Source: Selaginella moellendorffii
Taxonomy: Eukaryota > Plantae > Lycopodiophyta
Assembly (NCBI RefSeq): GCF_000143415.4
Contig: NW_003314329.1
Location: 931,763-995,762, forward strand
Length of the DNA stretch: 64,000 bases
Direction of reading: 5' to 3'
Under the pieces are notes generated by a model. That model made no database searches and had not been told where the DNA came from. It saw only the letters and a list, made by a program, of their open reading frames with translations. A program made the position numbers and the translations under genes. Of the stretch, positions 9,597 through 56,068 are shown piece by piece. Numbering within the stretch: position 1 is the first letter of the stretch; each line of letters opens with the position of its first letter.

Positions 9597-12500
9597 TGAC
9601 ACGAACCATGGGAATATTCCAAGAATATTCCATGGCCTGTGGGATTACTGTGGGATTTAAGGTTAGGAGGTTGGCCTAGGGTTTGCTCTCTTGTTCGTTT
9701 CATTGGTATCAGAGCAGCACGTTCTTTTGGGGATGGCAGGTGAGCAAGACATTGATCTTGATGAGGAGTATGGTGTTAGTGATGATAGCCATGAAGATGC
9801 GAAAGAGACTCTTGATGATGTCGTTGTGCGGCAGGGACGCCAAATTTTTGAGGTTCAGAGCTACATAAAGGAGGTTAAGGATTCCATTAATCTCATTAAG
9901 GATTTCTTGCTTCGCATGAACCCTCAAGGGTTGAATCAATCTCATGTCTGTGATTACCATTGGTACATCAAGCATGCCAAGGATTATGGTATCGTGGAAT
10001 GGAAATCATCACTGGATGTTTGTGATAGTCAAGAGGTTGATTCTTGGTTGGAATTGTGGGAAAGCTGTTGGTCTCACAATCCTTGTGAGGATAAGTTGAA
10101 GATAGATTTCTTTGTGACGAAGCTTACGGACCATGCGTCTTCATGGTGGAAGAACTACATCAAAGCTAATCCGAAGCCGACTTCTTGGACTAATTTGACA
10201 AAGGTGTTCCACGCTTCGTTTGTCAAGAAGTTGATCTTGTGAATCAGTTGTTAGAGATCCGGCAAGGGACTTTGTCTTTGGATGTGTATGCCTGCAAGTT
10301 TCGTGATCTTTGCCTTAGTCTCATAGGCACCTATATTGAGCTACTAAAGGTGCAATGTTTCATCAAAGGATTAAGCTCGGTGGATGTGCAGTAGAAGGTC
10401 AAGAAGGATTTTCCAGCAACATTGACTGATGCTATCACTAAGGCTTAGATCTTTTCGCCCGAACCGTCAGTCAACTTGGTCAACTCTGGTCAACGAGATG
10501 GTCTACGGAGTAGTCAACGTGATGACCAGCTCGCCAATGCTTCATATTCGGGGAAGAAACAACCGTTGTTCTGTTATGGCTCAAAGCATGAAGATGGTAG
10601 TGAGGCTAGAAAACTTCGTTTGGACCAGTGAGAGAAAGACAAGGTGGAGGGCAATTGTTTTCGTTGCCATAGAGCTGGATATCAGAGCAAGGATTGTTCT
10701 AAAGGGGTTAGTGAATGATAAGGTGACTGTGGTGGAAATTATAGGCAATGATGTGAGTGATAGTGCTTTTGGGGCTGTATTGCTTCAAGTTAGGCATTCT
10801 CTCGCATTCATGAGCCACAAGTTTGATGCCACACAACAGAATTGACCTACTTAAGAATGGCAACATTCTCTATATGAATCGGACTTCCATGTAGATTCAG
10901 ATCATCAGTCTCTCCAGATCTGGATCTTCGAGGCCACCTTGCTCGTTGGCAAGAGTTCCTGCAGGAAATGTCTGTTAAGATCTGGTACAAACATGGAGGT
11001 GACAATAAGGTGGTTGATGCATTATCCAGGATGGTAAATTTTATCTCGTTCGTGAAGCTATCCAGCGATCTCTTGGATGAGCTTAAGGAGTTTGCTGACT
11101 TCAACTCCTTTATCACTGATATTCGCGCGAAGGTTTTGTTGAGGGACGCCTCTACAGATTTGAAGGGTGACAAGTTTGTGTCAATCGAAATACGAGATGG
11201 AATCCTAGTGAAGAAGGGACGTGTAGTGGTTCCTCGTGTTGACAAACTCATCAAACGGATTTTGGTTGAGTTTCATGATGTGCCAAGTGCTGGGCATCCG
11301 GTGGTATTGAGAATGTATATGTTGGTGAAGAGGCATTTCTTTTGGCCTAGGATGAAGTCAGATGTTGAGAAGTACGTACGTGGTTGTTTGACCTGCCAGG
11401 TGGTCAAAGTTGATCATCAAAAGCTCGCTGGCCTCTATCATCCTTTACGTGTACTCAAGAATAAGTGGGATAGCATCTTGATAGACTTTATCACTGGTTT
11501 GCCCAAAACCTTTCAAGGAAATGATGCTATTTGGGTTGTTGTGGATCGTTTGACGAAGATGGCTCACTTCTTCCCTATGAAGTCAACGATAAAAGCTTCT
11601 AAACTTGCTCAGTTGTTTGTAGACTGGTTATTCAGTCTCTATAGTTTGCCGGGTGACATTGTGAGTGATCGGGATCTTAGGTTCACGTCCAAGTTTTGGC
11701 AAACAGTCTTTGAGAAAATAGAGACTAAACTAAGCATGAGTAGTGGTGAGCATCCACAATCTGATGGGCAGAAAGAGCTCATGAATCAACTATTAGAAGA
11801 TATGCTACAGTCTTTTGTGGGAAACTTGACTTGACAAGGAGTATGGGAGAAATACTTGCTTTTACTTCAGTTTGCTCACAATAGCGCTCATCAATCGGCT
11901 ATTGGCATGTCTCCTTTTATGGCGACGTATGGCTATAAGCCTAGGTCTCCTGTGAGTTTGAATTTGGCTTTGGTTCGAGTTCCTCATGCTTGTGATTTCC
12001 TGGAGGATATGCAAGACAAGCTTGAGTTGGCAAAATTGAACATGAGGCAAGCTCAAGAATGAGACAAAAGATTGGCTGATGAGCATCATCGTCATCAAGA
12101 GTACAAAGTTGGTGACAAGGTTTTTTTTAAACTGTCGGATGCATAACGGTCTTTAAAAGGAGGTGGCAATGCTAAGTTGTCTCCACGGTATTGTGGACCT
12201 TGGACAATTTTACAGTGTGTAGGGGATCTTGCGTACACTTTGCACTTGCCAGTTAGTTTGAAGATTCATCCAACGTTCCATGTGGGCAAGCTTAAAGTGT
12301 GTTTGCACTCTGGTGATATCGTGGATCAGTCCATCATCCAGGTTCCAGAGATTGATGCAGAGAAGGCTGGTCCGGCCAATATTCTTGCTCAAAGATTGGT
12401 GAAAACATGCCGGAAAACAACTAGGGAGTTGTTAGTTCAGTGGAATGGTTATTCCATGGACAAAGATATATGGGAAACTGAGGATGACATGAAGAGAGTG

Positions 12501-19123: not shown

Positions 19124-22100
19124 ACCTTCTGCATCCACTTTTGTTGTGGTGGGTATGAAATGTGCCATCTTCGAAAATCAGTCCACCACCACGAATATCG
19201 CATTGAACCCCTCGCTTGGGGGGAGTCCCATGATGAAGTCCATCGTAAGACATTTCCACGGATGATCTGGAATTGGGATGCTTTGTAACAAGCCCCCACT
19301 TGCCTTAGTCATGGCTTTGACCTGCTGACATATTACACATGTCTTTACATAGTCTTGGACGTCCTTAGCCATATCTGGCCAATGATACTTCCTCTTGAGT
19401 AAGCCCATCGTCTTGGGCACTCCACCGTGTTCCACAAGAGGTCCGTCATGACAGTCTTCTAAGGCTACCTTCCTTAGTTCCCCTTCTGGAATATACACCC
19501 TCGTTTGCTTGTAATAGATGAGTCCATTGCGTTTCGCATAGCTCGTTTTCTCTTCCGTTGGCAACTCACCTCTCTGGTGAGCTTCCCGTGCCTCTAGATT
19601 CCTCAGCAACACTTTTTGTGCTAGACCATCGTTCTCATATGCTGTCCGCATATCATCCCAAAAGGTTGTTGTCGCACTGGATATCGCTAACTTGAAGCTC
19701 GCTTTTCGAGTTAGCGCATCCGCCACGATGTTGCTCTTCCCAGGCTTGTATAGAATCTCACAATTAAACTCAGCCAAAGCATTGGCCCACCGACCTTGTT
19801 TCCCTCTCAGGTCGGGCTGTGACAAGAAGTGTTTCGTTGCCACATTGTCTGTGTAAACCTTGAAGTGTCTCCCAAGGTAGTGTCGCCACTCCTTGAGTGC
19901 CTTGACCACTACAAACAATTCCTTCTCATGGGCAGGCCATTTCTGTTAGGCATTATCCAACTTTTTCGAGAAGAACGCTATTGGATGGTTGTCTTGCTTC
20001 AAAATTGCGCCCAACATAAAGTCTGAAGCATCCATTTCTACCTCAAAGTTCTTACCAAAGTCTGGTAACACCAACATGGGAGCCTTCCTCAACTTCTCTT
20101 TGAGGTGGACAAATGCCACTTTGCATTCTGCTGTCCATACCATCTTCCCTTTTCCCATTTGGTCCGTTAAGGTAGGGCTACTCTTGAATAGTGTCTGATA
20201 AACTTTTGGTAGTAGTTGCATAGCCCCAACAATGCCCTTAACTTGTGTACATTCGATGGTCGCTCCCAATCCTGGATCGCTTGGACCTTCTTAGGGTCCA
20301 CTTTAAACCTGTCTTTGCCCAACACATGCCCGAGAAACTTTACCTTTTGTTGAGCAAAGTTATATTTGCTCTCTTTAGCATACAACTGATGTTCCCTTAG
20401 TTTCTCAAACACCTTTGTTAAGTGTTCGACATGCTCCTCTAGCGTTTCGCTATAGATCAAGATGTCGTCAATATAGATGACCACAAAGTGATCCAGATAG
20501 GGTACAAAGATGTGGTTCATCAACGCCGAAAACGTTCCTGGCGCATTGCATAGCCCAAAGGGCATCACCAGAAACTCAAGGCTCCCATACCTTGTTCAAC
20601 AAATTGTCTTCTTGACATCTTCCTCTGCTGCCCTGATCTGGTAGTATCCTGACCTTAGGTCAATCCTCGAGAAGTATTTTGCCTTTCCCAACCTATCGAA
20701 CAGTTCCTCAATCCTTGGCAAAGGGTATTTGTTCTTTTTTGTATACTTGTTGAGCAACTGGTAGTCTATGCATATGCGCATAGATCCATATTTTTTTTTC
20801 ACAAATAACACCAGCGCCCCATATGGCGACTTGCTCAACCTAACATACCCTTTGTCCACCAACTCCTCTAGTTAGCGCTTGAGCTCCTCGAGTTCCTTTT
20901 CGTTCAAACGATAGGGGGGACAAACCACCGCCTTAGCACCCTCGACTAGCTCAATCTTATGTTCTATCGGTTGTGCGGGGGTCAACCCCGCCGATAGCTC
21001 CTCTGGCATGGTATCCTAGAATTGGTCCAACACCAGCTGGATCACTAAAGGTACTTCTTCTATTCCCGTCTTTTTGTCACTCTTCACCGAGAGTAAGCAC
21101 AAAAATGCTACCTTGGTTCCTTTAATGAGTTGTCCTTTTGTGGACACCAGGTTTAGGTAGGAATCTTTGGCCTTGTATTGCCCTACCTTTATATCTTGGG
21201 CCTCCACCCCAAATCTTCTTCCTTGGGCATTCGCCAGTACCTCAAGGTTTCTACCTTGTCCATGCAGGGCTACCACGAACCGATTGAACTAATCCATTCT
21301 GAAGATCACGTTAAATCCCGCCATGTCCAACATGGTGAAATCCATGTCCACTTTCCATGTCCCTACTTCGACTCTCGCTTGTCGAAGTACCTCATCGGTG
21401 CTTTGGCTACCTTGAAAAAACTCTATAGTCCTTGGTTCGCTCAACTGCTACACCGTTAGTCTGGCTTGCCGGACTATGTTTGCAGCCACAAAATTATTAG
21501 AAGCACCTGTGTCAATAAGGATCTTAACAAAGCTACCTCTGAGCTTCCCTCGGAGGGATAGTAGATGTTGCGAACAACTCTCTACCAAAGTTGCTCGTGT
21601 AATGAGTAACTTTGAGTTAGGGACTAGATCACGTTCCTTAGTTTGGATTTCACCCAACTTAATGGCCATATTGGCTCTGGCCTTCTTCGGGTAGGAACAT
21701 TCCCTCAAGAAGTGTCCCGCTTCACCACAGTTGTAGCATATGTTGTTTCCCACGCTGCTAACTGACTTGCCCTTCTTATCCCTGGGTTTGTCTCTTTTTG
21801 CTTTACTCCCCCACGTGTTCGCTCCCTGGCCACCGGATCTGCCTTTTCGGAACCCTGAGGACTCATTCTTAGAGAAACTCTTTTTGAATTTCCCTTTGCT
21901 ATATGTTCCCCTTGGTTTGGCCCCTTTGCTAAATGTGGACCTCGACCCCGTCGCGTTCCCCTTTCGCAGGTTATCCTTGAAATGCGCCTTGATAGCCACA
22001 TCCAATGCTTCTTTGTAATTGGTTGGGTTCCAACGCATCACCTCGCCGCGAGCCCAGGTTTGCAAGCCTGATATGAAGGCATGGAATGCATCCATATCAC

Positions 22101-23832
22101 CCATATTTGTTACCAGTATCCTCTTTTCCATAAATCCATTCACATACTCTTGAATGGTTCCGGTTTGCTTTAGCCTACTCAACTCATCCCTTAGGTGCAG
22201 AGTAGCATTCGAAGGAACGTATGTCATACGGATCCTTGCCTTCATCATTTCCCAAGTGGCCACTAGTCCATTGTTGGCCTCCGTCGTTCTCCACCAAGAC
22301 TTGGTATTATCTGCCAAGTATGGTTTTGCATATGGGACCTTCTCCGAGCTCAGTAACCGCAACACTCGAAAGTAGTCCTCCATATCATAAAACCAATCTT
22401 CCACCACCTTATAGTCATTCACTCCCTTGAAGACTGGTGGGGGCTTTGGTTTGTACTTAGGAACTGCTTGAGGGACTGATTCCACTTCAGTCTATTCGAC
22501 CTTGTTTAGTTCAGCCTCAGTCCCTGCTGAAGGGTCCGCACCTTTTGTGCTACTAGCATTCGCAGTCTTTCACTTTTTCTTCCGTTTCTCATCACGCTTT
22601 AGCTTGCGTACAAGAGTCTCCAATAGGGCATTGGTTTGTGCCAATTGTCCTTTTATAACGTCCAATCGAGCTTTGGATGACCAAACCTCACCACCAGACT
22701 CCTATTTAGAAGTTTCCTCACTGGAGTCCTCCTCATGCAAAAATTCCTCATCTATAGCCTTTTGTTCGACTGGAGGCTCTAGCTTTGGTAGAGGTTCTGT
22801 CTCCACCTTGGTTCGTTTCCACCCTGCCTTTGTCATCTCCCAGCAATTCGCCTCTATCCTTCACTAAAATTGAGGAAAATGCTTTGATACCAAATTGTAA
22901 GCCACAAATTTTTCCTTTCCAATTTGCCAACTTACTTTGTCTATCCGATTAACACTGCCTTGGCTTTTGCTAAGTTCCCTCGCCAAGGTTCCCACCTATT
23001 GTACCAGCTCCTACTTGGTCCTACTTGGTTTCAGCTACTCACTACACAAGCAACGAAGTGTTAACCATCCATCCACGGATTCCCAAATCTCTCCTAATTC
23101 CCCTCCCTGGGTTAAATTGGACTTAAAGTTCGGTTACATTCCCCGCAGGCACAAGCAACCAAGCACACCAACCCTCCAGGTTCCTAACATCCCTTGGTAC
23201 AACAAGATTTGATTATGGGACCCTCTAAATCCCAAGCCTTGGGTGCAACACTTGCTTCGGGACACCGGGAGAAACACCATGGCCTAACAGCCCGGTATGG
23301 GTACCTCTACCCACTTCTATCCCAAAAGGAAAGCCCAAACCCCTAGGAAGGGCGAGGACCAATGAGCCACAAGGTACTCAAGTGGGGCACCACTCCACAT
23401 GAGCCGAGAGCACTGCAGTCAGTTTCCTGTTCGGGAGTGAGAGTTGGTTTTGAGCACTTCCTTGGGTGGCCCCTCCAACACCACCCAAGTCCATACTCAC
23501 TCCCACCCAAGGCCCCTCGGCCCCAGCCTCAACCTCAAGTCAGTTTTGAAGCACTACTAGAGAGTTCTTTCAAGAATGGTTCCTAGACCTCACTATCCCT
23601 ACTATACTTTTGGAACCCCCTGCAGCACCCCCCCACCCCCCCCCGGGAGACACATGCTTTGGGTTTTCACCCCTTGACCCGTATTAGTACTTGGACTCAG
23701 TCTCGGACTCGATCTCGGACTCAATCTCGGACTCGACTTTGGACTCGACCTCGGACTCGGTCTCGGACCCAATTCAGATCTCGGACCCTATCTCAAACTT
23801 GGTCTTGAACTCGGTCTCCGATTTGGCCTTGG

Positions 23833-24506
23833 TGTAGTGCATGTGATCATGGGATGAGATTTGGATATACTGTCACCGTGGATCCTTGGAACCTTGGGAG
23901 ATAAATGGGGATAAAATAGCCACTAAGGGCTCTCTCATCAAGCAATTGCCCCTTTTCCAGTTGGCTTAAGGGGAGAGAGATAAGGTGCGCTACAGTTGGT
24001 ATCGGAGCAAATGGCATGGGTTCGATTCCCATTGATTAGTGGCTACTTAAAAGTATAATATACCCTTGAGCAAGGTATATTCCTACCCCTAAATTTGAAA
24101 TTGTACGTATTGTGCATCCATGCGTATGTCCTTCCTCTTGTGTGGAGTATCCACGGACAAAAGTATTCACCGTGGGACTGTGGTACAGGTGGATGACTAG
24201 TTGCCTCACATGGAATAGCTGGTCTACACAATGGAAGGATTGGTAGATTGAGTGCGGAAATGGAGGTGCTGGTTCCCCTTGGCTCAGTAGGGGTTGTTAG
24301 TCAATAGTCAATGAGGACATTGACATCTCTGAAGGGGGGGTGAGTGTAGTGCATGTGATCATGGGATGAGATTTGGATATACTGTCACCGTGGATCCTTG
24401 GAACCTTGGGAGATAAATGGGGATAAAATAGCCACTAAGGGCTCTCTCATCAAGCAATTGCCCCTTTTCCAGTTGGCTTAAGGGGAGAGAGATAAGGTGC
24501 GCTACA
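23833..24506 (+). mobile_element. TRIM (terminal-repeat retrotransposon in miniature), 674 bp, nested in the family A 5' LTR
   Basis: Two identical 162-bp LTRs (23833-23994 and 24345-24506, TG...CA). TSD CTTGG. PBS TGGTATCGGAGC at 23997-24008. PPT GAAGGGGGGG before 24345. 350-bp non-coding interior. Confidence 0.97.
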
Positions 24507-27524: not shown

Positions 27525-28054
27525 TGTAAGCTTTTGATCCTTAAAAGTCATTTAGCCGAATATTATTTAAACCCAATGATGCTTAACCCTAAATATCCCT
27601 AAATTTTTAACCAATTAAAAAGAGGGGCACACTCTTGTTTATGGATCCTTTCCCTCTATATTTAAACCTTAATGTAATCCTAAAACTTTTAACCAATTAA
27701 AAAAAAGAATACACTTTTGTTTATGAGCCCTTTCCCTCTATATTTAAACCCCAATATAAATTAAAGGTAAATTGGATATGCTAGATGTCAATCTTGTGAC
27801 TTCTTTGATACCAAATATAAATTAGAGGTAAATTGAACCTACCAGATGTCAATCTCATGACCTATTTGATACTAAATATCAACTCTTGAGTTTGGATTTC
27901 CTAAGAGGTCACCTAGCTCAGTACTACTTAAACCCAAGGATATCTTAAAACTTTTAATTAATTGAAAAAAGTGTATTTTTATTCATAAACTCTTTTCTTT
28001 TATATTTAAACCCCAACAGATTGTCTCTTGAATTATTCTTTTTACTTGCTTACA
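27525..28054 (-). mobile_element. Old, AT-decayed Cassandra-like TRIM
   Basis: Starts TGTAAGC and ends GCTTACA. Flanks CACAA/CATAA are a near-TSD. PBS relics 'tttgataccaaa' (~27804) and 'tttgatactaaa' (~27865). Decayed 5S-like block 'ggatttcctaagaggtcacctagctcagtactac' at ~27894-27927. Confidence 0.75.
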
Positions 28055-28697
28055 CATAAATAAACTAATGAGTCTCTCAATTGGAGAGTCTATACCTTTA
28101 GTGGATGTATAAGGTATGATGAGCCTTCAATGTTAAACCATTGATGAATAGTGATTTGGTGTAAAAGATAAAAATGGTAATCCATGATAAGGTTACTTTA
28201 TCAAATGGTTTATTATTCAATGAAAACATTAAACTTTGTCTGTGGGTGGTAGAGTTGTAAAACACAAATTTCTAAGCCTTAAAGTGGAGTCAAAAGTGTG
28301 CTATATGGTAGTGGCCAAAACAGAAGTCTAATGAGTGTAACACATTTAGACCAAAAATTCTAACTCGGAAAGTCGAGAGTTATAGGATGATTACTCATAG
28401 ATGGATAACCTAATCTTTAGGAAATATAATTATGATAACAATAATCTTATACTACCAATGAGAGAAATGCAAATGAACATGGTCTTAGTGTAATGGGCTA
28501 GTATGTTCCAAATGTATAGTAAGGATGTTATATGGGTCAAACATGGTTGACTAACTTGAGATATAATTTAGCTCCAACTTGACAGTGAGAGCTCACTATT
28601 CTCATAAAGTCTAATAAAATGCAAGATGCAACCTACTACCAAGCAAAATGCTACTGAAGAAAGGCACAAAAGTCACTTTTCTAGAAAAGCATAATAG

Positions 28698-30188
28698 TGT
28701 AAGCTCCTGAGTTTGGACTTCTCGGGAGGTCACCCAGCCCAGTACTGTTCAAACCCAAAGACGCTTAACTCCAAAATATCCCAAGACCCTTAACCGATTG
28801 GAAAAGGGGGTGCACTCTTATTCATGGGCCCTTTCCCTCTATATTTGAACCCTTATGGATCATCTCTCAAGTCGTTCCCTTTGGTTGCTTACAATCCACC
28901 ACACTTCCTTACAAGTTCACGCCCTCGTGAACGGAAGCTGAGAGCTGCAGCTCTCCCGAGAGCCCTGCTCTCTTGACACCTTACCCCTCGGGTCGAGCCC
29001 AGTGGGAGAAAACTGGACCAGCCAGATGTCAATCAATGTGTGGTTTGATTTCCCTACAATCCACCACACTTCCTTACAAGTTCACGCCCTTGTGAACGGA
29101 AGCTGAGAGCTGCAGCTCTCCCGAGAGCCCTGCTCTCTTGACACCCTACCCCTCGGGTCGAGCCTAGTGGGAGAAAACTGGACCAGCCAGATGTCAATCA
29201 ATGTGTGGTTTGATTTCCCTACAATCCACCACACTTCCTTACAAGTTTATGCCTTCGTGAACGGAAGCTGAGAGCTGCAGCTCTCCCGAGAGCCCTGCTC
29301 TCTTGACACCCTACCCCTCGGGTCAAGCCCAGTGGGAGAAAACTGGACCAGCCAGATGTCAATCAATGTGTGGTTTGATTTCCCTACAATCCACCACACT
29401 TCCTTACAAGTTCACGCCCTCGTGAACGGAAGCTGAGAGCTGCAGCTCTCCCGAGAGCCCTGCTCTCTTGACACCCTACCCCTCGGGTCGAGCCCAGTGG
29501 GAGAAAACAGGACCAGCCAGATGTCAATCAATGTGTGGTTTGATTTCCCTAGCCAACCAACAGAGTCATACTTGAGACCGCTCTGATACCAAATGTAAGC
29601 TCCTAAGTTTGGACTTCCTGGGAGGTCACCCAGCCTAGTACTATTCAAACCCAAGGACACTTAACTCCAACTATCCCAAGACCCTTAACCGATTGGAAAA
29701 AGGGGTGCACTCTTGTTCATGGGCCCTTTCCCTCTATATTTGAACCCCATGGATCGTCTCTCGAGTCGTTCCCTTTGGTTGCTTACAATCCACCACACTT
29801 CCCTGCAAGTTCACGCCCTTGTGAACGGAAGCTGAGAGCCGCAGCTCTCCCGAGAGCCCCACTCTCTTGACACCCTACCCCTCGGGTCGAGCCCAATGGG
29901 AGCAAACTGGACCAGCCAGATGTCAATCAAGATGTGGTGTGATTCCCTTAACCAACCAACAGAGTTGGACCCGAGACCGCTCTGATACCAAATGTAAGCT
30001 CCTGAGTTTGGACTTCCCAGGAGGTCACCCAGCCCAGTACTATTCAAACCCAAGGACGCTTAACTCCAAAATATCCCAAGACCCTTAACCGATTGGAAAA
30101 AGAGGTGCACTTTTATTCATAGGCCTTTTCCCTCTATATTTGAACCCTTATGGATTGTCTCTCAAGTTGTTCCCTTTGGTTGCTTACA
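28698..30188 (-). mobile_element. Cassandra-type TRIM tandem array: three LTRs, each with a 5S-rRNA-derived segment
   Basis: LTRs 28698-28893, 29594-29787 and 29993-30188 (TGTAAGC...GCTTACA). PBS TGGTATCAGAGC on the minus strand (29580-29591, 29979-29990). PPT-like AAGGAAGTGTGGTGGAT. Single TSD AATAG around the whole array. Minus-strand LTR segment AGTTAAGCGTCCTTGGGTTTGAATAGTACTGGGCTGGGTGACCTCCTGGGAAGTCC matches the 5S A-box/IE/C-box region. Confidence 0.93.
28894..29550. repeat. 165-bp tandem repeat x4 (amplified Cassandra internal domain)
   Basis: Units start at 28894, 29059, 29224 and 29389. Near-identical. Each holds a GTTCACG-N4-CGTGAAC-type hairpin and the palindrome GAGAGCTGCAGCTCTC. 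Confidence 0.95.
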
Positions 30189-31075
30189 AATAGCCACTTT
30201 TCTACACAAACTCCAAACTTTATCCAACTTAATTGCCTTAGCCCCAAAAATTAGCATCCCTTTCCAAGCTGCATCATACAAATTACATAATGAGGTCTAA
30301 GTTAACCAAAGTCAACTCCTCCAACCATTTCATTAGTTTGTACTAGCTTATGAAAATGGAATGGTTTTCAAACAAAATAACCAGCAGATCAACCATTGGA
30401 AAGTCTAAGAAAATTTGTGGAAAATTTTCCATCCTAGAGAAAGAATGACTCCAAATCTAGTGCCCAAGTCTCCAAATGTAGTGCATGTGGTTTTTACCCT
30501 TTATACTATGGTGATTTATCATAGAATAATCACGAAGCGGAACCTAAACCCTCTATATGCCACATACCACATACCCCAAGTTTAAGGGGCTTGGGCCACT
30601 AAACAAAAGAACAGAGCCAAACTTTTAAATATAGAGCCAAGGAATGAAGGCATTAAAGCATAGAACAACTCTTGAGTATACAGCTTAAGAAGTGAAGGGA
30701 CAGGAGCACGAAGTGACTTGGAATAGTCCTAGAGTATCTAGCATCCCAATGCTAGGACTAGCACGCAAAAGAAAGCCAAAAAATACCAAATAGAGTGTGG
30801 CACTATTTCAGTATACCAGTGGCCTAACGTGAGGATATGGGTACTCCACTAACTAGCATGGTATGAAACTTAGGCTTAGATCTAAGTTAGATATAGAACA
30901 AGGACAAGCATGTAAGCGAGAGCTAAACTATGCCTACTATACATTTGGAACCCCCGCCGCCCCCCCCCCCCCCCAACAATGCTCTCGGAAATCCCATCGA
31001 GCAGAAGAATACTTGCACCAGAGGGGGTGATCGTTCGACAAAAAAGAAACTGATTCAGGGAGCTGTGGACGCGCC

Positions 31076-31841
31076 NNNNNNNNNNNNNNNNNNNNNNNNN
31101 NNNNNNNNNNNNNNNNNNNNNNNNNNNNNNNNNNNNNNNNNNNNNNNNNNNNNNNNNNNNNNNNNNNNNNNNNNNNNNNNNNNNNNNNNNNNNNNNNNNN
31201 NNNNNNNNNNNNNNNNNNNNNNNNNNNNNNNNNNNNNNNNNNNNNNNNNNNNNNNNNNNNNNNNNNNNNNNNNNNNNNNNNNNNNNNNNNNNNNNNNNNN
31301 NNNNNNNNNNNNNNNNNNNNNNNNNNNNNNNNNNNNNNNNNNNNNNNNNNNNNNNNNNNNNNNNNNNNNNNNNNNNNNNNNNNNNNNNNNNNNNNNNNNN
31401 NNNNNNNNNNNNNNNNNNNNNNNNNNNNNNNNNNNNNNNNNNNNNNNNNNNNNNNNNNNNNNNNNNNNNNNNNNNNNNNNNNNNNNNNNNNNNNNNNNNN
31501 NNNNNNNNNNNNNNNNNNNNNNNNNNNNNNNNNNNNNNNNNNNNNNNNNNNNNNNNNNNNNNNNNNNNNNNNNNNNNNNNNNNNNNNNNNNNNNNNNNNN
31601 NNNNNNNNNNNNNNNNNNNNNNNNNNNNNNNNNNNNNNNNNNNNNNNNNNNNNNNNNNNNNNNNNNNNNNNNNNNNNNNNNNNNNNNNNNNNNNNNNNNN
31701 NNNNNNNNNNNNNNNNNNNNNNNNNNNNNNNNNNNNNNNNNNNNNNNNNNNNNNNNNNNNNNNNNNNNNNNNNNNNNNNNNNNNNNNNNNNNNNNNNNNN
31801 NNNNNNNNNNNNNNNNNNNNNNNNNNNNNNNNNNNNNNNNN
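31076..31841. other. Assembly gap
   Basis: Run of N. Confidence 1.
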
Positions 31842-34800
31842 TACTAAATATGGAATGTCCCTAGATTGTGAATTTGGATATGGGATGAACACTACTATGT
31901 TCAGAACAATATTTACATTCTGTAGATATGCCAAATGAGCAAATCTAGACACTTTCCATAAATAGCATTTGAGACCGAAATGACACTAACACAAAAGGCA
32001 TGATAACGAGGGTGTTTGGCAGATATAGTAAGCTATCATTTATTGATATTGAGGGACTAGTCTCAATATATGAGGGTTCTTATCAAGTCAATACAAGACA
32101 AAGTAAAAAAAAACTAACAAGTTGGGCCAAATATGCTTAACTAAATAGACAAATAAGAATTCATTTTTTATGCTTGTTCGGCCAAGTATAGATGCAAAGT
32201 CCAGTTTACTCACTTGAACAAAAAGGACTAATAAAGGGTTCAATAATACCAACCTTTTACTATTGTGGCAGTAAAGAAAGAATATCTGAAAGGATTAGTC
32301 GATAGGTAACTTTCAATACCTGAAGTCATATTCGCGACAATACATATCCTCCGCATACTTGGGTATTTACTTGGCTTTAAATCATGTCAACTTGACAAAA
32401 AAGAATGCTTCTCACTTTGTAACATTTTAGATTCTCTCCAACTTTGACTTTTTAATGTTTCTTTCCCACTTGGATTCCCTCATTAGGCAGTTTAATGCCA
32501 AATGCATTATATCCATATTCTTCACCACTCGATATATCACTAGAGAGTGGAAACTTTATAGGTTGCCCTCCAACTTTTAAGAATCCACTATTATCACCAA
32601 ATTTCAGCTAAAATGAATGGTAATATTTTCTAAAACCTTTTAGTGGTATGTTGTAGGTAATTTTTCTTCAACCATGCCTTTTGGTTATAAAAGAAAATCC
32701 CCATTATTATCAAGCTCCTGAATCTTCTTTATGAAAAAGATGCTCAATGCATCTAAGATTTTAGCTGGACAAAATGTAAAATCTTCTAATGTGACCTAAT
32801 TGTTAGAAATCTCTTCTAGAATGACTTCCCCCACTTCCTAAGGTGATACATTAATGGCACCACCTTTAGATTTTATTAGTATAGTTGTTGGAGCCTCTTC
32901 AATACATTCTTCTTATTGGTATTTGCCCAAGATTGCTTTTATAGCTTCCAAAACTTTGTATAAATTTGGTGAAAAAATCCCATCTATCTTGCATTATTTT
33001 ATAAAATTCCAAAGGATCCATAATGAAATCTTAAACTTTGTTGAGAATGATTTCAGAGTTTTGGACAGCCAACTCTCATAAAATAATTCATGTCAATTTT
33101 AATCCATATGGCATAATAAGATTAATTTATGTGTTTGGTTTGGTTGTTCTCTTTTCTCCTTCCTTTTACCCAGGTTCTTTTGAGCCTATCCAGCTTGCCA
33201 ATTGCAACCCCAGAAATCTTCAATAGTAAGGTTGTTGCCCACCAACTTATAGCCTCAAGGAGATATTACACAATCTCTACAATAACTCTCTTTCTCATTT
33301 TTAACTTCTCGGCCATACCTCTCTCTCTCTCAGTCCTTAACTTTTAGACATACTTAAAAACCCCATTAGTTAACAATTGTTGATAATACATACAAAAATT
33401 CTTTAACCCAACTCACCTAAAGTAATGAGTTGTTTCTTGCACCAAAATTCTTTGTTGACCACTCCAACTCTTTTGAGACCTTTCCTAAAACTTCTTTCAC
33501 ACTCAGGATCATTGTGTTTCCATAGTTGGTCTTAAATAATTTGAAGATTCCTTCTCTACAATCTTATAAAGTCGGGTTGAATTTAGAATTCTTTCTAAAC
33601 TCTCCAATACACTTAAATTGTTATTACAAGCTTAAGAACACTATGTGTTCATAATAGTTCATAAGGTATAAAGAAATTCCTCACAAAGAACACTCTTCTT
33701 TATAAAAAAAATAGAAACTTATTCATAAGATTAAAGGGTCTTGGTCTATTTATTCACTATTAATATTATCAACAATTTTAGTAAAGCTTTCTTAAACATA
33801 AAACTTGTTAACATCCACTAGCCCAGTATTCATAAATATTATAGACCATTAAAATTAACAAAAGATATTGAGGATTTTGGAGAGTCATGAATGAGATTAT
33901 GTTCTTGGGTTGGGTTTGGGTAAATATTTAAAGAGATATTTGTGAAATGTTCAAATTAAGTTCTGAAATACAAAAGTTGAAGATGGTAAAAATTCCTAGT
34001 GTACTTAATAGTTTTAGACATTTTTGAAGGACAATACCAAAGAATAATTTTACTAAAATGAGGAATTTTTTTGAGATTTATCTACTAAAATATAAATGTC
34101 AAATGAATTATTATAGAAAATATTGATATTTTGATTCCCTTCTAAAAATCACCAGGGTGAATATCTATGGCAAGCCATGCATGATTGCAGGTTTTGGGGG
34201 GAGATACAACGTGGCAAAAAATTGTAGTATACTGTAAAATATGTGAATTAAAAACACATATGTGCTTGAATTTTTTAAACACACAGCTGTGATATATTCT
34301 TTTGGATGCCACTTTTTTTCAAGGTATATATAGGAATTCTTAATCCAGATTAGTATATTGCCATATCAATATCTTTTTCTTCATTTTTCAAGTTTGTCAA
34401 GAATGGTAGAAATGCATGACAAAATGATTGATCTATCAACCTAATTAGAAATATAGCTAAACCAAGTATCATGTGAGAAGAGTATTGGCCCTAAGCCTCC
34501 ATGCTTTAGCCATTGTCCATTGCCAGTTGTGCCAATTTGGCAATGTCATTGCAACATTGGAGTGCTTGATTATGGCTCCCAGTGCATTGAGCATGTGCTT
34601 ATGATTTGCAGTGGCTACATGCATTTAGGTGTCAATCTAGAGTTTTATTGATCTCTACCTCAAAACAAGCAATAATTTCAAATGCCATATGTTTTGTGGC
34701 ATGTTCACCAAGAACAAAATCTAAGTTAGTAGAATAATTGTAGTTATTGCTAGGAGCTATAGGAGATTATCAGTTGATTGATAAAGATTGCAACATTGTA

Positions 34801-45123: not shown

Positions 45124-47331
45124 ATGGCCAAGGCGATCGTCCCCGGGCTCCAAGAAAGGCTGCGATCGCTGGTGAATGGCAAGGGCTGGGACTACGTCGT
45201 CTACTGGAAGCTCAACGACGATCAGAGGTATGGGATATGTTCTTCGCTAGCGTGGAAAGACCTGTGTCGAGGATTTTGTGGCTCATCGCTCGCAGGTTTA
45301 TCGATTGGGTGGGCTGCTGTTGTGGCGGAGTGACAGCAGGCCATGGAATTGGAGCGGATTTTTTCTCGCCACAGCCTCACTACCTGGATGGAGGAGCGCC
45401 TTGTCCCGATATCTCGTTCCCCCATCCATCAACAAAGACGTGTACGATTCTCTCCGCCATGACGCTCTCTCCTTCCATTCCTCTTGATTCGGCCGGGTAA
45501 GAACAAGTATGAGCTCGCTCGCACAGAGAAACTGTAGTGAGTCCTTTAGCTTCGTGCGTGTGCTATCATATGTCACGAAACTCTTGTTTGTGTACTTACG
45601 CTTTGGTGGTTTCTTGGCAGTGTTCACGCTCAGGTGCTTTTGTCAGGGCAGCCTCGCTGGATTAACTTCTCGCTGGAGAGTAACCAGGTATATAAGGAGG
45701 GATTTTACTTAGAGATTGTGTCGTCGTGGTAACGGAGGTTTTGCTTACAGCACGAAGGCGTGCAAACCAAAGTTTACATTCCAATCCAGAATGGAATCGT
45801 GGAGCTCGGATCGTCAAGCCAGGTGCTTTTGATATGCTAGAAGTGAGATGACAAAGCATTGATTCTTTTCTTTGTTGCAGATTGCCGAGAATGCCATGGT
45901 CATTCAAAGTGTAAAAGCAAAGTGTGGGGATCCATGGCAGGATTTTCAGGTTGGCAATTACAATTCCATGCAAACTGGCTTGTTATGTACCTTTCTTTTC
46001 CACTGTCAGGGTTTCCAGGAGAACGTTGACCAGCAAGGCTTCAAATCTCTGTACAAGAACCAAGAAGATGGTTTAGACAAGCACTTCAACGGCCATGGCG
46101 ACCAGGTGCACTGGACTTCGGCGCTGGACACTCACCCTTGGGAACACGACGTAGGATTTTCCGACAATCAGTTCTCACTGAACATCGCGGCACCGACTCA
46201 GCTCAACTTCCTTGGGCAGCCCTCTAAAACGGGTGGTCAACCGTCGGACCACTTTGACAAGCAAGTTGACTGTTCCCGCCCCGAGAAACAAGGGCCGCCA
46301 TTTGTGCAGGGGCTGCAAGACGTCCCTCCTCTTGCTCCTCCAAATCACAGCTTCTCGGAGTCTCCTCACGGCAGCGGCGTCTCCAAAGAGAACTCCGAAG
46401 TCAAGCAGGAGACGCGCGCTGATTCGTCAGATTGCAGCGACCAGGTGGACGAAGACGATGAGAAAGCCACCGGCCGCTCTGGGCGGCGGCACTTGTCCAA
46501 GAACTTGGTCGCCGAGAGGAAGCGGAGGAAGAAGCTTAACGAGCGCCTCTACTCTCTCCGAGCATTGGTCCCAAAGATAACCAAGGTAACGATTTGAGAC
46601 TGACATTATAAATGAAGGTGAATGACTGACAGGGTGGTTTCCTGTGTCTCAACAGATGGACAGAGCATCAATCTTGGGCGATGCCATTGAGTACGTCAAG
46701 GAGCTACAACAGCAAGTTAAGGAGCTGCAGGACGAACTGGAGGACGATTCTCAGGCTGCCAACAATATCCCCACAATGACAGACGTTTGTGGTGGAGGAC
46801 ACAAGCACCCTGGGAGCGAAGGAATCACGATTGCAGACGTTGACACCAACAAATGTGCCTTGAAAGCGGATGATATCAACGACAAGAAAGTGGAAGATCT
46901 CACGCAGCCAATGCAGGTAAGTGCTTTGCAACAAAAACACACGGCAAGTCTTACAATGTTTTTTCAGGTGGAGGTGAGCAAAATGGATGCTCACTTGCTA
47001 ACTCTGAGGATCTTTTGTGAGAAGCGGCCGGGGGTGTTTGTGAAACTGATGCAGGCACTGGATGCGCTGGGTTTGGACGTCCTGCATGCAAACATCACCA
47101 CGTTTCGAGGATTAGTCCTTAACGTTTTCAATGCTGAGGTAACGTTTTTGCTGTGGTTCTTTTCGCTTTTATCGAGTGAAGTTTTGGCTACTGTAGATGC
47201 GGGACAAGGAACTGATGCAAGCTGAGCAGGTCAAAGAGACGCTCTTGGAAATGACATCGCAGCCAGAAGCGCGAAGCAGCTCGTCGCTTGTGTCTGAGTC
47301 TCATATGGGAGTGATAACTATTGATGGGTAA
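45124..47331 (+). CDS. bHLH transcription factor, ABORTED MICROSPORES (AMS)/TDR-like
   Basis: MYC-N region LQERLRSLVNGKGWDYVVYWKLNDDQR|FIDWVGCCC. bHLH SKNLVAERKRRKKLNERLYSLRALVPKITK|MDRASILGDAIEYVKELQQQVKELQDELE. C-terminal ACT-like region FCEKRPGVFVKLMQALDALGLDV. Stop at 47329-47331. Confidence 0.88.
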
Positions 47332-47442
47332 ACGAGAATGCTGCCAAGTTAAAAGTGATGGAATTTCCAATCTTCCATGACAAATATCTATTTATCATCA
47401 ATTTCGAACATAAATGTAACTTCCACTTGGAGTGTATACAAC

Positions 47443-47856
47443 ATGGATTTCGGGGGTTTAGTTTTTTCAATTTCCATACTGATTATGTTATTTAGAGGCT
47501 CAGGCTCAGACTGTTCTTGTAAGAGTGTTGAGTATAACAACGTTGCTAACTTCACGATTTTAGAGGATGGTTATAATTTCAAGCCCGGAGTGTCCCGGCA
47601 GCTCTTAGATTGCAAAGATCACAATAAGAGGAATGCAATTGCTAGGTGGTTGAATATGGAATATGGAAGGCATGAGATAGAAGACAACAATCCCACTTAC
47701 AGTTATTTTGTAGAGGATTTGCAGTGTTTTGAGATTACTTCTTTTAATGGATGGGGTCATTTTAGAACCACAAATGGATGGTATGGTTGGAGTTTCTGGG
47801 CCTTCACAGGGAGTTTCATTCAATCTTCTAACCACTTGAGTGTTGATTTTCTTTAA
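47443..47856 (+). CDS. Putative small secreted protein, unknown family (137 aa, intronless)
   Basis: Signal-peptide-like MDFGGLVFSISILIMLFRGSGS followed by a 4-Cys, aromatic-rich domain. Open frame in AT-rich sequence. Confidence 0.5.
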   Translation: MDFGGLVFSISILIMLFRGSGSDCSCKSVEYNNVANFTILEDGYNFKPGVSRQLLDCKDHNKRNAIARWLNMEYGRHEIEDNNPTYSYFVEDLQCFEITSFNGWGHFRTTNGWYGWSFWAFTGSFIQSSNHLSVDFL

Positions 47857-48832
47857 TTCTTGGTTAACCATTGGGTATTCCTAGTTTATGTTTTGTTTAT
47901 ATTTAATTGAAGTTTTTAGTTGTATACTTTGAGTTTACTAAACTTCTTCACAAAATTACTAATAAATTTCTTTTTATTTGTTATTTGCCATAGCTAAATG
48001 ATTTTTCTTGCTAAATAGAACGAAAAAAGAAAGATTTACTGTATGTTTAACAAAAAGCAAAAGTAAAGCTGTAAAGGTTGTAAAGTTTGCATCCATCGAT
48101 GCAAACTTCCATTTCTCGCGATAAATGTTAGGACATAGAAAATAAAATGTAGAGGCAGCAAGCTATGTACCAAGCTCTAGTTTTTCCGGCTTTTACGATC
48201 TTGCTACTGGCACGGTTTCAAATCTCAGAGCTGCTGGTGCTAGGTATAGTCTTAAGGCCGTTCAGCCCAACATATCAAACGCTTCAGCTATTTCACCGAA
48301 AGCTTACAGTGCTTCGAAGTTATGTCGTTCAATGATTGGGGCCATTACAAGTCGGGGCATGGGATTACCATCGATTTTACCTGAACATCATTGACAAATG
48401 TAAAACCATGACAATAAGCTTGAAAAAGATTTAGTTTCCAGAACTAGTCTGAAAATCAGAGTAGAGTTTTCTTTCACGTGACTCAGCAGAAAATGGATGG
48501 ATTGTCACTCACATCTATCATCAGAAACTGTGAAATAACTGGTCATCACTGCCACGAGTAAAGAAGGGATTCATCTAATTGGCTCAGCAACTCGGTGAAA
48601 TTTTCACTCATGTTGCCTTCAGACAAACTGTGAAATTTCTATAGACATCATCGCCATTCTAGCCTCTAGAAGGGAAGAAAAACTTACAAGGAATTCGTGG
48701 CCTCCTAGTTGGAGCGAGAATGGAGCTTTACTGATCCATCGCAAGCCATTGTAAGCACTGCCAATTACGCGTTATAGAAGGTGAGAAGAGAAACACACAA
48801 ACAGAAAACAAACCTGCTTTGAAGGCATGGTT

Positions 48833-50183
48833 TCAGTGACCACTCCCAATCTTTAGCGCGCTCAAGAACATATGTTCTAGTGCCGCTTCTCGACAAAGTG
48901 CTGCGAGCTTCGACATGTCAGTCTCGCCGAGCTCTTCGATTTGAGTCGTCTTGAACCGGCGCAGCTCGTCAATGTTGCGGCCAGCAGGACACTGCTCCTC
49001 CTCGAGAGCCCGCAAATTCATAGCTTGCCATCTCAAGTGACGAACTCTCTTCACATATTCGGTAATATTTGTGTCTTCAGCCTGGACAAATGGACAATCA
49101 TGATGTGAAACAACACACATACACATACCTCAATGATTAGAATACCAGGAAAGCCAGGCTTGCAGTAGCCACCCACACGAAGTTCCTTTCCCCACTCCAC
49201 GATACATTTCCTTTTCCGCGTGGACTTGATGTGATGAAACCTTCACAAAAGTGATCGAGCTAGAAATTGTTAAAGATTCACAAAAGAAAACAAACCAAAA
49301 GAGTTTTCTCTTTAGGAGTTGTGACGCTCCAGACATCGATGAAGCGTTGGAGGATTCAGTGGTTTGATCGTTTTCTGATATCCGCCAAGCCAAGTCCTAC
49401 ACAAGACAGGTTAAGAACCTCCAAAATGGAAGCGAGAAGAAACTTACCTGTACTTTTTGTAGCACTAAAAGAGTCGATTCCTGTCCGAGAGCTCCCTCGG
49501 CAACGCTGGCTGCCGCTCGATTTAAGCTGTCAAGTTGATCTCTTGCAACGCTTCCATGGCATCTCACGTTGACAGCCACCGCTTGGCTCTCTGGATAGTC
49601 GTCCGGGAAGGTGAACTGGATGCTTAAACACTCAAGCAACTTAAGGTGGACAGTGAACGAGACAGAGCCACCATAGCCAGCCTCAAACTCTCCCTGGCCA
49701 GAGTATATAGACCGCAAAGCCTCCACCTGTGGATCGAGAATTTTTTTTTTTTAATCAGAAAACCATAGAAAACTTATCAGAAATTCTTCACAGTGGAAGA
49801 AAGTTTTCCAGCATCGACCAAAGAGAATTTTCAGCAATGCGCAAAACCAAATTTGCATTTGATCGATGCACATTCAAAGAAAGAAAGACCTTTATGAAAT
49901 TATCACAAAAAGGGTCTATGAAAAGGGGAAAGAAATCGAAAGCGACGAGATTCATCCGCAGAGAATTTTCAGCAATGCGCTAAACCACATTTGCATATGA
50001 CCGACGCACATTGAAAGAAAGACCTTTATAAATTATCACGAGAAGCGTCTATGAAAAGAGGAAAGAAATCGAAAGCGACGAATTTCATCCGCAGAAAAAG
50101 TAGGAACAATCGATCACAAGCAAACATTGTACCTCGTCTAGCTGCCGCTGGAGATTCGCGGAAGTGTGGCGGCGTCCATCCAT
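48833..50183 (-). CDS. RWD domain-containing protein 2-like (RWD + DUF1115), multi-exon
   Basis: MDGRRHTSANLQRQLDE|VEALRSIY...FTFPDDYPES (RWD YP motif) ... HHIKSTRKRKCIVEWGKELRVGGYCKPGFPGILIIE ... EYVKRVRHLRWQ ... FLSALKI. Confidence 0.85.
49822..50095. repeat. ~138-bp tandem duplication in intron 1 of the RWD gene
   Basis: 'agagaattttcagcaatgcgc...gaaagcgacga..ttcatccgc' occurs twice. Confidence 0.85.
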
Positions 50184-50459
50184 AGCTCTAGCTCCGCGCT
50201 GCCGCCGCCGCCGCCCATTTTGGAAAAGAAGAACCCTAGTGGGAGAGAAGGAAAGCAGCATTAAAGAAGAATTTTTTAGGGCTAAAGGAAATTACTTGCT
50301 AGGGCGGACGGAATGGATCTCTGATGGTGATGGCGATGGCGCTGGCGCAGTGGCTCGCGGCATCCGAGGCGTAAGCGGTGCGATCGCGGCGGCGAGCTCG
50401 GCAGCTAGATCACGGTCCTAGGATGCTGGTGAGCTCGCCGCTGATGAAGGGCTTGTTCG

Positions 50460-51731
50460 ATGCCCCTCCCCAATTCTGCCGTGGACGCGCTTGGCTTCGC
50501 GACGCTGCTCCTGGTGCTGGTGCTCCTCATCCTCGGCGTCCTCTGCGCGGCCTATGTTCTCCACTTCCGCTCCAAGATCCACCACGACAATCTCTTGGCG
50601 CTCAGGCATTTTAATTCCCTCTGGATCGTTCGCCTCATTCTCATCCTCTTCGCGGTTCTCTGGGGATTGGGCGAGCTCCTCCGGCTGCCACTGCTGCGAA
50701 AGAAGGGCTGGTTCCTCCACAGGCTTGGATTCCGGTGGCAAGTCACCAGCTGCAAGATCTACATTCTCTCGTCGCTGGGGATTCTCGAACCGTGCTTCTT
50801 CCTCACCGCGCTGTTCCTCGTCCAGGGATCCATCCGCAGCGCTCCCTTCACGCCGAGAAAGAGATGGAACGGCAGAGTGATCGTCTCGGTGCTGGGATTT
50901 TGCGCTCCGGTGTTCCTCGCGCAAGTGTTCTTGGTGGTGGTGAGCCCGATTGTTTGGGGGCGGCGGGAGGAGGAGGGCAGTGCGAGCTACAGGGCTGGCG
51001 GAGGATTCGTCGATCGATTCAAGCTCCCGCACTACTTCACGCGGGTGTTCCAGGCGATGGAGGTGGAGGAGAGGGAAAAGGTGGTGGTGGCGGCGGCGGT
51101 GTGCACGTATCCTCTCCTGAGCACCGTTGTTCTTGGGATGTTTGGCTGCGTCTACGTGATCTACTTCCTCTACCTGGGCTGGAAGATGGCGGCGCTGGTG
51201 ATCAACCGGAGGCTCCAGCTGCGGGTGTACGCGCTGGTGATCGCGGTGGCGCTGCTGTTGCCGATCCACGTCGTGTTCTTGGGGCTCTCGGTGCTCTCCC
51301 GGCCCAGCGAGCCGCTGTTCGAGGCGGTGGGATTCCTGGGCTTCTTGACGGTGCTGCTGTGCACGACGGTGGGCGAAGGAATTCTCGTGGTTCGTCCCAT
51401 TGCCGACGCGCTGGCGATTCGGTGGCGATATGAGGAGGCCGCCTCCGCCAAAGCTTCGTCGCTCTGGGAGCCGCCGCCGCCAGTGAGATCATCATCCTCG
51501 GAAGAACTTCCGCCTCAACGCCAGTTTGTAGTTCCTCTCACGGCGGCGGTCTTGGGTGACGAGTCTGCTACTGCTGGGGATTCGAGAGTCGAGAATATAG
51601 AGATTTCGAGACTGCACAAAGCTTTCCAGGCAGCGATGGTGAAATCGTCATCGTCGTCTTCATCGTCACCACCGAGTCCCACTCTTCCCGGAAGAACACT
51701 CGTCTCATACACGAATAGAATACTGGTATAG
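50460..51731 (+). CDS. Plant-specific ~7-TM membrane protein (resembles the candidate-GPCR Cand1/At1g57680 family, from memory)
   Basis: Intronless 423-aa ORF with about 7 hydrophobic segments and motifs WIVRLILI, EPCFFLT, CTYPLLST, VINRRLQLRVY, GILVVRPIADALA. Confidence 0.75.
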   Translation: MPLPNSAVDALGFATLLLVLVLLILGVLCAAYVLHFRSKIHHDNLLALRHFNSLWIVRLILILFAVLWGLGELLRLPLLRKKGWFLHRLGFRWQVTSCKIYILSSLGILEPCFFLTALFLVQGSIRSAPFTPRKRWNGRVIVSVLGFCAPVFLAQVFLVVVSPIVWGRREEEGSASYRAGGGFVDRFKLPHYFTRVFQAMEVEEREKVVVAAAVCTYPLLSTVVLGMFGCVYVIYFLYLGWKMAALVINRRLQLRVYALVIAVALLLPIHVVFLGLSVLSRPSEPLFEAVGFLGFLTVLLCTTVGEGILVVRPIADALAIRWRYEEAASAKASSLWEPPPPVRSSSSEELPPQRQFVVPLTAAVLGDESATAGDSRVENIEISRLHKAFQAAMVKSSSSSSSSPPSPTLPGRTLVSYTNRILV

Positions 51732-51998
51732 TTTCTTTACCTCATCTTTGATAAAAGAAATACGTATTTTTCCTCTTACTGCGATGACGATCACCTCTAA
51801 GCTGTGGTTTTTGGTCCCAATCTTCCCGGAAGAACACTCGTCTAGAATATTGGTATAGTAAAAGAAAAGGTATTTTTCCTCTTACTGCGATGACGAATCT
51901 CTCAAAGTAAGATGTGATTTTTGGTCCCAATCTTCTCGGAAGAACACTGGTCTCATACAAGAATAGAATATTGATAATAGTTTTTTACCTCATCTTTC
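51678..51998 (+). repeat. Three-copy tandem repeat of the gene's last codons and 3' UTR
   Basis: 'tccca.tctt...ggaagaacact.gtct...agaata.tg.tatag' at ~51678, ~51816 and ~51925. Confidence 0.85.
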
Positions 51999-52487
51999 AC
52001 CGATCACGATCACAAGAACATCTCTCGGAGCTATACCAAAGATGTAATTTTTACCAATCGCACACGCAAAGCCATGGAATTTATACACGAGCCTCCAATG
52101 GAGAAGCCGTCCATCCATGGACAAACATTATCCAGCCGCGATGGAGCAAAAAAAAAACTATTATGGGCGAAATGATTATGTCGCACTGTTGACCATTTTG
52201 GGATTATTTGGATCTAGGGTTGTGATGGATTAGGGCTTATGCGCGTGAGCGAGCGAGTGCTGGATGAGGAAGAGGAGGCGCTGGAGCAGCGGCGGCAGCG
52301 CAGCATCAGACAGGATGGAGCTGCCAGAGTGTGAGCTGAGGAGGAATGTGTGAAAATGGTAGACGGCGATGAATCGAGCGAGGAGAGCGAGGGAGGGGCA
52401 GCGGCAGCCGCGGCGTAGCGATTGCTCGCCGCAATCTCAGAGGAGCGGCCACATTCTCGGCGCTGGAGCATCGATTCCGGCGATAAT

Positions 52488-55400: not shown

Positions 55401-56068
55401 TTGTGAAGGTACAGTAAAAGTTATCGGTTTTGTTTAGTAACACGAAAATTTGCAGGTTTGCGACTTTGGATTGTCTCGAATGAAACATCACACTTTCTTG
55501 TCTTCGAAGTCACAGGCAGGCACGGTGGGTACACAAGACTCCCTTACTTTTCTCCTGGGTAGTTTTTTGGATTTGAGAGGACTTGTTTTTAACAGCCTGA
55601 ATGGATGGCACCAGAAGTATTAAGAAATGAACCGTCTAACGAAAAGTAAGAATCGTCTTTGCTTTGCTAAATTGACACGAGCTCCTTTCGTTTGCAGATC
55701 GGATGTCTACAGCTTTGGAGTTATCCTTTGGGAACTGGCTACTCTGCAACAGCCGTGGCATGGAATGAACTCAATGCAAGTCGTCGGGGCTGTCGGTTTT
55801 CAAAACAGGAGGCTCGACATCCCAGCGGACATGGATCCCGCCATCGCAAAAATCATCCAGGAGTGCTGGGAAAAGTATGTGTTTCCTTCTTAGATTTTGT
55901 AGCGCCTGACAAAACAAATCCTCCGTTTCTTTTGGTGGCAGCGATCCTGCTCTTCGTCCAAGTTTTCATGAAATAATGGATTCCCTGCGGCCTTTCCAAA
56001 GACCTGTTATCCCCTCGCAAGGGGAGGCAGGAGGAGGTAAGCAAAAGCAACCACGCAAGGCTTCGTAG
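52488..56068 (+). CDS. B3 Raf-like MAPKKK (EDR1/SIS8/CTR1 family), multi-exon
   Basis: [10 protein letters not shown] start. EDR1 domain [13 protein letters not shown]...DGFYDVYG...[12 protein letters not shown]|[15 protein letters not shown]. Kinase [35 protein letters not shown]|PEWMAPE. Stop at 56066-56068. Confidence 0.93.

Follow-up and report, generated by a model that had tools for sequence, protein, structure and literature searches.

On its minus strand, the genomic sequence of Selaginella moellendorffii analysed here carries what is very probably a decayed Cassandra-type TRIM, with a 5S promoter in its LTRs and in a form that comprises three LTRs and two interiors within one 5-bp TSD. 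The window denotes throughout the whole stretch of 64 kb that was analysed. A preceding sequence-only reading had proposed a Cassandra-type element, and this proposal was borne out: the structural tests were passed, and the host is a lycophyte.

Anatomy of the element

The three-LTR, two-interior array under a single AATAG TSD that the same reading had described was recovered with all of its coordinates, as were the 56-nt 5S-like blocks, each of which stops 17 nt before the 3′ end of its LTR (Table 1). All three LTRs start with TGTAAG and end with CTTACA. The minus strand indeed carries a PBS and a PPT, as had been claimed before. The PBS, TGGTATCAGAGC, does not differ from the one given for Cassandra in PMC7215508. 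The PPT is weak: of the 15 nt that precede LTR B, 11 are purines, and the same count applies to the 15 nt preceding LTR A. ARAGORN detected no tRNA in the 64-kb window that could pair with the PBS. With LTRs of 194-196 nt, a basic interior of 205 nt that is non-coding and a 5-bp TSD, the anatomy of a TRIM is present, and none of the open reading frames of at least 90 aa listed for the window overlaps the element. The layout is that designated L3I2, i.e., each inner junction has a PPT and a PBS and one TSD surrounds the whole.

Table 1 Coordinates of the element, its parts and a neighbouring relative in the window
Feature	Position	Strand	Remarks
Whole element	28698-30188	minus	LTR-internal-LTR-internal-LTR
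TSD AATAG, left copy	28693-28697		adjoins TG of outer LTR; read directly
TSD AATAG, right copy	30189-30193		adjoins CA end of other outer LTR; read directly
LTR C (5′ LTR in element sense)	29993-30188	minus	196 nt, TG..CA; RF00001 34.3 bits
LTR B (middle LTR)	29594-29787	minus	194 nt; RF00001 26.9 bits
LTR A (3′ LTR in element sense)	28698-28893	minus	196 nt; RF00001 31.4 bits
PBS TGGTATCAGAGC, first unit	29979-29990	minus	2 nt past upstream LTR C
PBS TGGTATCAGAGC, second unit	29580-29591	minus	2 nt past upstream LTR B
Internal domain 2	29788-29992	minus	205 nt, non-coding; PPT-like tract is last 15 nt, 29788-29802
Internal domain 1	28894-29593	minus	700 nt; 44-nt PBS head, then four tandem 165-nt units
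5S-derived block, LTR C	30010-30065	minus	A-box 30054-30065, 18-nt spacer, C-box 30023-30035, on to GGAAGTCC
5S block, LTR B	29611-29666	minus
5S block, LTR A	28715-28770	minus
Partial duplicate of A-box region, LTR C	30075-30089	minus	25 nt upstream of true A-box
Predicted R region, LTR C	30097-30114	minus	18 nt; predicted Pol III start 30114 through T5
TATA-like AAATATAG, LTR C	30134-30141	minus	20-27 nt upstream of predicted start; putative function
T5 run, LTR C	30097-30101	minus
T5 run, LTR B	29697-29701	minus
T4 run, LTR A	28802-28805	minus
Older relative of same 5S-bearing family	27527-28056	minus	60-80% identity to young copy, AT-enriched, rearranged; 640 bp away

The recurrence of 5S-like blocks at a spacing of 400-900 bp is reminiscent of a 5S rDNA array, and the locus might on this ground be taken for a short row of 5S rRNA pseudogenes or for a satellite derived from 5S instead of a retroelement. 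Such an interpretation is extremely improbable. Each repeat is bounded by TG..CA, followed by a tRNA PBS and preceded by a purine-rich tract, a 5-bp duplication surrounds the whole, and the likeness to 5S is partial, with no copy reaching the Rfam gathering score. The pseudogene array or satellite was rejected because of this retroelement anatomy (TG..CA, PBS, PPT and TSD).

The copy numbers, three LTRs and four 165-nt units, could in principle have been created by the draft assembly, and a gap of 765 N some 900 bp downstream shows that the window stems from a gapped draft. We regard this as very unlikely. Private substitutions are found in every LTR and in every 165-nt unit, which would not be expected if reads of a single copy had been mis-joined, and an assembly artefact was rejected on these grounds. 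Furthermore, arrays of this kind have been verified by PCR and resequencing in maize and pear (PMC4717578, PMC4079214).

The 5S-derived promoter module

In all three LTRs, the 56-nt block spans exactly the stretch from the A-box to GGAAGTCC past the C-box, and every LTR carries the 5S internal control region (A-box, intermediate element and C-box) in sense orientation. When the Rfam model RF00001 was applied at its gathering score of 38, no match was obtained in the whole window, and hence there is no 5S gene in it either. Judged by E-value in a search of 2.1 kb, all three LTRs match the model on the minus strand with 34.3, 31.4 and 26.9 bits (E 9e-5 to 8e-3). The 5S origin claimed in the sequence-only reading, for which a comparison with RF00001 had been named as the refuting test, is therefore borderline by this test, with nothing at the gathering score and clear matches by E-value in all three LTRs. 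The scores of the Selaginella LTRs (27-34 bits) exceed those of two reference Cassandra elements, here called L002 and L003, which were scored in the same way and reach at most 28.8 bits; this value was obtained for one LTR, and the others gave E-values above 1. These lower scores indicate that an RF00001 score below the gathering score is normal for such elements. The likeness to 5S extends over approximately 56-81 nt of the LTR, and the 5′ half of 5S cannot be made out.

A second line of evidence is provided by the box motifs RGTTAAGYRHGY and RRRATRGGTRACY, which make up the Cassandra pattern of Kalendar 2020 (PMC7215508). In its strict form the pattern has no match in the window. When one mismatch was allowed per box, three occurrences were found in the window as compared with none in 200 shuffles. 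Both boxes deviate from their motifs by a single mismatch in each LTR, and the A-box and C-box are separated in all three by exactly 18 nt, which is the published value for Cassandra (PMC7215508). The exact PBS follows 32 nt past the C-box motif and lies inside the range of 5-200 nt given for Cassandra. The C-box variant of the Selaginella LTRs reads GGGCTGGGTG, while the canonical C-box is AGGATGGGTG according to Maiwald 2024 (PMC10853983). Because each box deviates at one position, a search with the strict published motifs overlooks the Selaginella family. The E-values for RF00001 together with the shuffled pattern searches exclude chance as the source of the likeness to 5S.

The 5S block occupies positions 124-179 of the 196-nt LTR (63-91%). 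This is outside the range of 25-75% of the LTR within which Maiwald 2024 places the 5S region of Cassandra, never at the termini (PMC10853983). The earlier statement that the block is usually located more centrally agrees with that survey. It does not extend to ferns, where the PBS lies 8 bp from the 5S part according to Kalendar 2020 (PMC7215508), closer still than in the Selaginella element, or to L002 and L003, which show the same geometry near the 3′ end. Both reference elements are on plant contigs retrieved by one pattern scan of metagenome contigs, and as this pattern demanded a nearby PBS, they show that a geometry with a close PBS exists and not how frequent it is.

A partial duplicate of the A-box region is common to all three LTRs (14 of 16 positions with one gap, shuffle p = 0.003). 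The sequence-only reading had mentioned neither this duplicate nor the unequal interiors nor the older relative nearby.

Predicted transcription start, T-run and R region

The start site was placed 49 nt upstream of the A-box on the basis of geometry. Counted along the LTR, this predicted start is at position 75 and the last residue of the T5 run at position 92, which yields a terminal repeat of 18 nt. An 18-nt repeat has also been described for the ends of Cassandra RNA (Kojima 2024, PMC10886601). The T-run is placed in L002 and L003 as it is in the Selaginella LTRs, and its role as a terminator is a prediction; for Cassandra, Liu 2025 locates a terminator within the 5S domain (PMC12486564).

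In the life cycle that we propose, RNA polymerase III would be recruited to the 5S promoter and would initiate some 49 nt before the A-box, traverse the interior and halt on reaching the T-run in the following LTR, by which the 18-nt terminal repeat would be left for strand transfer. The PBS after each upstream LTR is of the initiator-tRNA-Met type, and reverse transcriptase and integrase would have been supplied by an autonomous LTR element. The T5 run, located 14-18 nt past the predicted start, should hinder polymerase III in the 5′ LTR too, a puzzle that is common to all Cassandras. A T4 run occurs in each unit of interior 1 and is absent from interior 2; the runs in interior 1 could stop polymerase III as well.

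Comparison with two reference Cassandra elements

L002 probably comes from a grass, as suggested by a MIR1435-like match, and L003 is a plant contig with a Cassandra element flanked by the TSD ATTTT. The complete element of L003 (5932-6442) has an interior that is itself built of short tandem repeats. The element of L002 (approximately 1220-1664) is rearranged; its second LTR is devoid of the first bases and carries an insertion. A common layout unites the Selaginella element with both of them. The LTRs measure 179-196 nt, the A-box is found at 54-63% of the LTR, the C-box ends at 78-85%, and a run of four or five T residues falls between +9 and +21 relative to the predicted start. The 5S core of the Selaginella element aligns to the cores of L002 and L003 (p = 0.002).

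Two fundamentally different origins of the 5S module have to be weighed. Either the Selaginella family shares a single 5S capture with the Cassandras of ferns and angiosperms, which would then have taken place in the first vascular plants, before lycophytes and euphyllophytes split, or a lycophyte TRIM captured 5S independently and came to work in a Cassandra-like manner without kinship to the fern and angiosperm lineage. We rate the first of these as tentative and rather unlikely, and the second as a realistic possibility that nevertheless falls short of probable. Under the first, the element would also have preserved a 5S promoter that is nearly canonical; for Asteraceae, by contrast, promoter boxes that mirror the 5S gene of the host have been described. 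An independent capture would agree with the finding that the Selaginella LTRs show no significant similarity to those of L002 and L003 outside the 5S core in unconstrained comparison (p = 0.14-0.22). The same lack of significant similarity outside the core applies to L002 and L003 when they are compared with each other (p = 0.33-0.41), so that dissimilarity of this kind proves nothing. Further points in favour of a separate event are the Selaginella core, which is nearer to the 5S model than are the cores of L002 and L003, as expected of a younger capture, the C-box variant that this family has in place of the canonical sequence, and the existence of Ajax in ribbon worms, from which it is evident that the same design can arise twice (PMC10886601). 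Against it stands the agreement with Cassandra in the limits and orientation of the module, the placement of the T-run, the 18-nt R region and the closeness of the PBS. In addition, when the A-box register is held, the stretch from the predicted start to the T-run resembles that of the grass-like L002, which is weakly significant (p = 0.025), and a G-to-C change in the A-box is common to the Selaginella element and L003. In the same register, the TATA-like stretch compared with L003 gives p = 0.07. As far as sequence comparison goes, these hints of similarity are compatible both with common descent and with convergence brought about by shared functional constraints.

History of the array

Identities between the LTRs range from 91.3% (B-C) to 93.9% (A-C), the outer LTRs A and C being the closest pair with a difference of 6.1%. 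Over the three pairwise comparisons, 38 of the 40 mismatches are transitions, and there are 5, 10 and 7 changes private to LTRs A, B and C, respectively. Divergence and private changes of this extent indicate that the copy is old and decaying. When interior 2 was compared with the consensus of the four 165-nt units plus the head, 19 of its 205 positions differed (9.3%). Among the differences are four transversions and a cluster of five within 8 nt next to the PBS (p = 0.02). The contrast in transitions and transversions has a Fisher p of 0.18, and we estimate the excess divergence of the interiors at p of about 0.03-0.1.

These observations bear on the question of how three LTRs came to lie within one TSD. 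The array could have grown in place: a two-LTR element would have been inserted, giving rise to the single TSD, and its 5′ LTR would then have recombined unequally with the 3′ LTR of the sister chromatid. Tandem expansion at the DNA level is evident at this very locus from the four 165-nt units, and the near equidistance of the three LTRs would fit a triplication soon after insertion. In that case, however, the interiors should have been identical at the start, and yet they are further apart than the outer LTRs, which is not expected from in-place triplication of a single element. They also exhibit the five clustered changes and the four transversions, whereas LTR decay consists almost purely of transitions. 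Moreover, it is the middle LTR that is most divergent, as would be expected if an older array had served as its template, and the closeness of the outer pair fits reverse transcription, which equalises only the outer LTRs at integration. We thus lean towards integration of the array as one unit over growth in place, although each of the statistics is weak alone, and consider the latter a plausible but less probable course of events. If the array did integrate as a unit, it would have been reverse-transcribed either from an array that already existed or from two distinct RNAs packaged together, and decay would have set in afterwards.

The two interiors are unequal in length (700 versus 205 nt) owing to the four-fold 165-nt unit of interior 1, which Tandem Repeats Finder (TRF) reports as a tandem repeat with 97% matches over 4.0 copies. 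Each unit begins just past the PBS head and extends to the PPT, units 1-3 also hold the first 4 nt (TGTA) of the LTR, and successive units are joined by a two-base overlap. With 1-4 private changes, each unit has so few that either the amplification is younger than the array and took place at the DNA level or the units have been homogenised by gene conversion. The growth of one interior to four units would accordingly be a later event in place, brought about by slippage or unequal exchange at the DNA level.

Arrays with three LTRs are well documented elsewhere. In pear, three-LTR Cassandras with a TSD account for 15.5% of the intact copies (Yin 2014, PMC4079214), and L3I2 is the commonest tandem form of TRIMs in maize (Gao 2016, PMC4717578). 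Multi-unit transcripts have been recorded for Cassandra (PMC7215508), and Cassandras with multiple LTRs that are transcribed and transpose were reported by Yin 2014 and Kalendar 2020. Given this frequency of the three-LTR form under one TSD in Cassandra and other TRIMs, the Selaginella array is in itself ordinary. It resembles the multi-LTR Cassandras of pear and the L3I2 TRIMs of maize in the perfect 5-bp TSD and in the PPT and the PBS that adjoin each inner LTR (PMC4079214, PMC4717578). It differs from L3I2 TRIMs in its four-fold amplification of a 165-nt unit that takes in the PPT together with the initial 4 nt of the LTR.

Surroundings in the window

The older relative listed in Table 1 comprises one near-complete and two truncated LTRs as well as two interior units of approximately 60 nt in which remnants of the PBS are preserved. 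The partial A-box duplicate 25 nt upstream is present in its 3′ LTR and absent from its 5′ LTR. The evidence for mobility of the family in this single window consists of these two neighbouring copies.

Scaffold GL377691.1 (GCA_000143415.2) aligns at approximately 98% to positions 46133-64000 of the window and, judging by this alignment, most likely represents the second haplotype. It ends near 39 kb of the window by extrapolation under the assumption of collinearity, and is thus short of the element and the transposon-rich stretch. A search of this scaffold revealed no copy of the 5S-bearing family.

Several other features of the region were recorded. The insertion site is bracketed by an inverted repeat of 22 nt with 91% complementarity (28505-28526 and 30930-30951); its arms may mark the termini of a DNA element of about 0.95 kb that predates the array and received its insertion. 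At the target site, the direct repeat CACTTTTCTA is present twice (28668-28688 and 30189-30209), with a distance of about 21 nt when the element is left out, and is distinct from the AATAG TSD. The assembly gap of 765 N is located at 31077-31841; the long open reading frames on both strands at 30882-31952 and the GC content of 25% in that region are artefacts of this gap. PBS sites of the tRNA-Met type that belong to other LTR elements, either exact or with one mismatch, are situated at 9704-9715 (plus strand), 22881-22892 (minus strand) and 23997-24008 (plus strand), and a gag ORF (21448-22485) and an integrase ORF (10968-11834) were found near these sites. An ORF for a PPR protein of 628 aa (56177-58063) is 98% identical to an S. 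moellendorffii protein at NCBI.

Relation to known TRIM families and significance

According to reviews, Cassandra ranges over ferns, monocots and eudicots. With the Cassandras of ferns and angiosperms, the Selaginella element shares short LTRs with a 5S promoter in sense orientation, the 18-nt box spacing, a T-run in the 5S-equivalent domain, the PBS TGGTATCAGAGC, a 5-bp TSD, a non-coding interior and the occurrence of tandem forms. The location of the PBS very near to the 5S part is shared with the fern Cassandras in particular (PMC7215508). The Selaginella element is unlike Cassandra in that its host is a lycophyte, each box motif has one mismatch, the C-box reads GGGCTGGGTG, the 5S block occupies 63-91% of the LTR length, the A-box is partly duplicated and no significant likeness is seen outside the core in unconstrained comparison.

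Among TRIMs with polymerase III promoters, Ajax of ribbon worms contains, like the Selaginella element, only the promoter part of 5S and has been judged to be of independent origin (PMC10886601). Helenus is a TRIM with a polymerase III promoter too, but has the A and B boxes of tRNA and LTRs of 120 nt; one of its members, Helenus-1_SMo, resides in the same species, S. moellendorffii (PMC10886601). For this species, Gao 2016 described eight TRIM subfamilies, SmoRetroS1-8, five of which form tandem arrays (PMC4717578). None of the eight was named Cassandra, and 5S was found in no other TRIM family (PMC4717578). The Selaginella 5S family may be among SmoRetroS1-8 without having been recognised as such. 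In those accessible papers that treat Cassandra together with Selaginella or lycophytes, no lycophyte Cassandra is reported.

The three-LTR array adds little to this picture: a further example of a known form, it offers modest evidence for transposition as a unit. The published strict motifs overlook the Selaginella family by a single base per box. Whether Cassandra has a single origin in early vascular plants or multiple origins is openly debated (Maiwald 2024, PMC10853983; Liu 2025, PMC12486564), and for this debate a family that has the complete Cassandra layout in a lycophyte constitutes the deepest sampling point.
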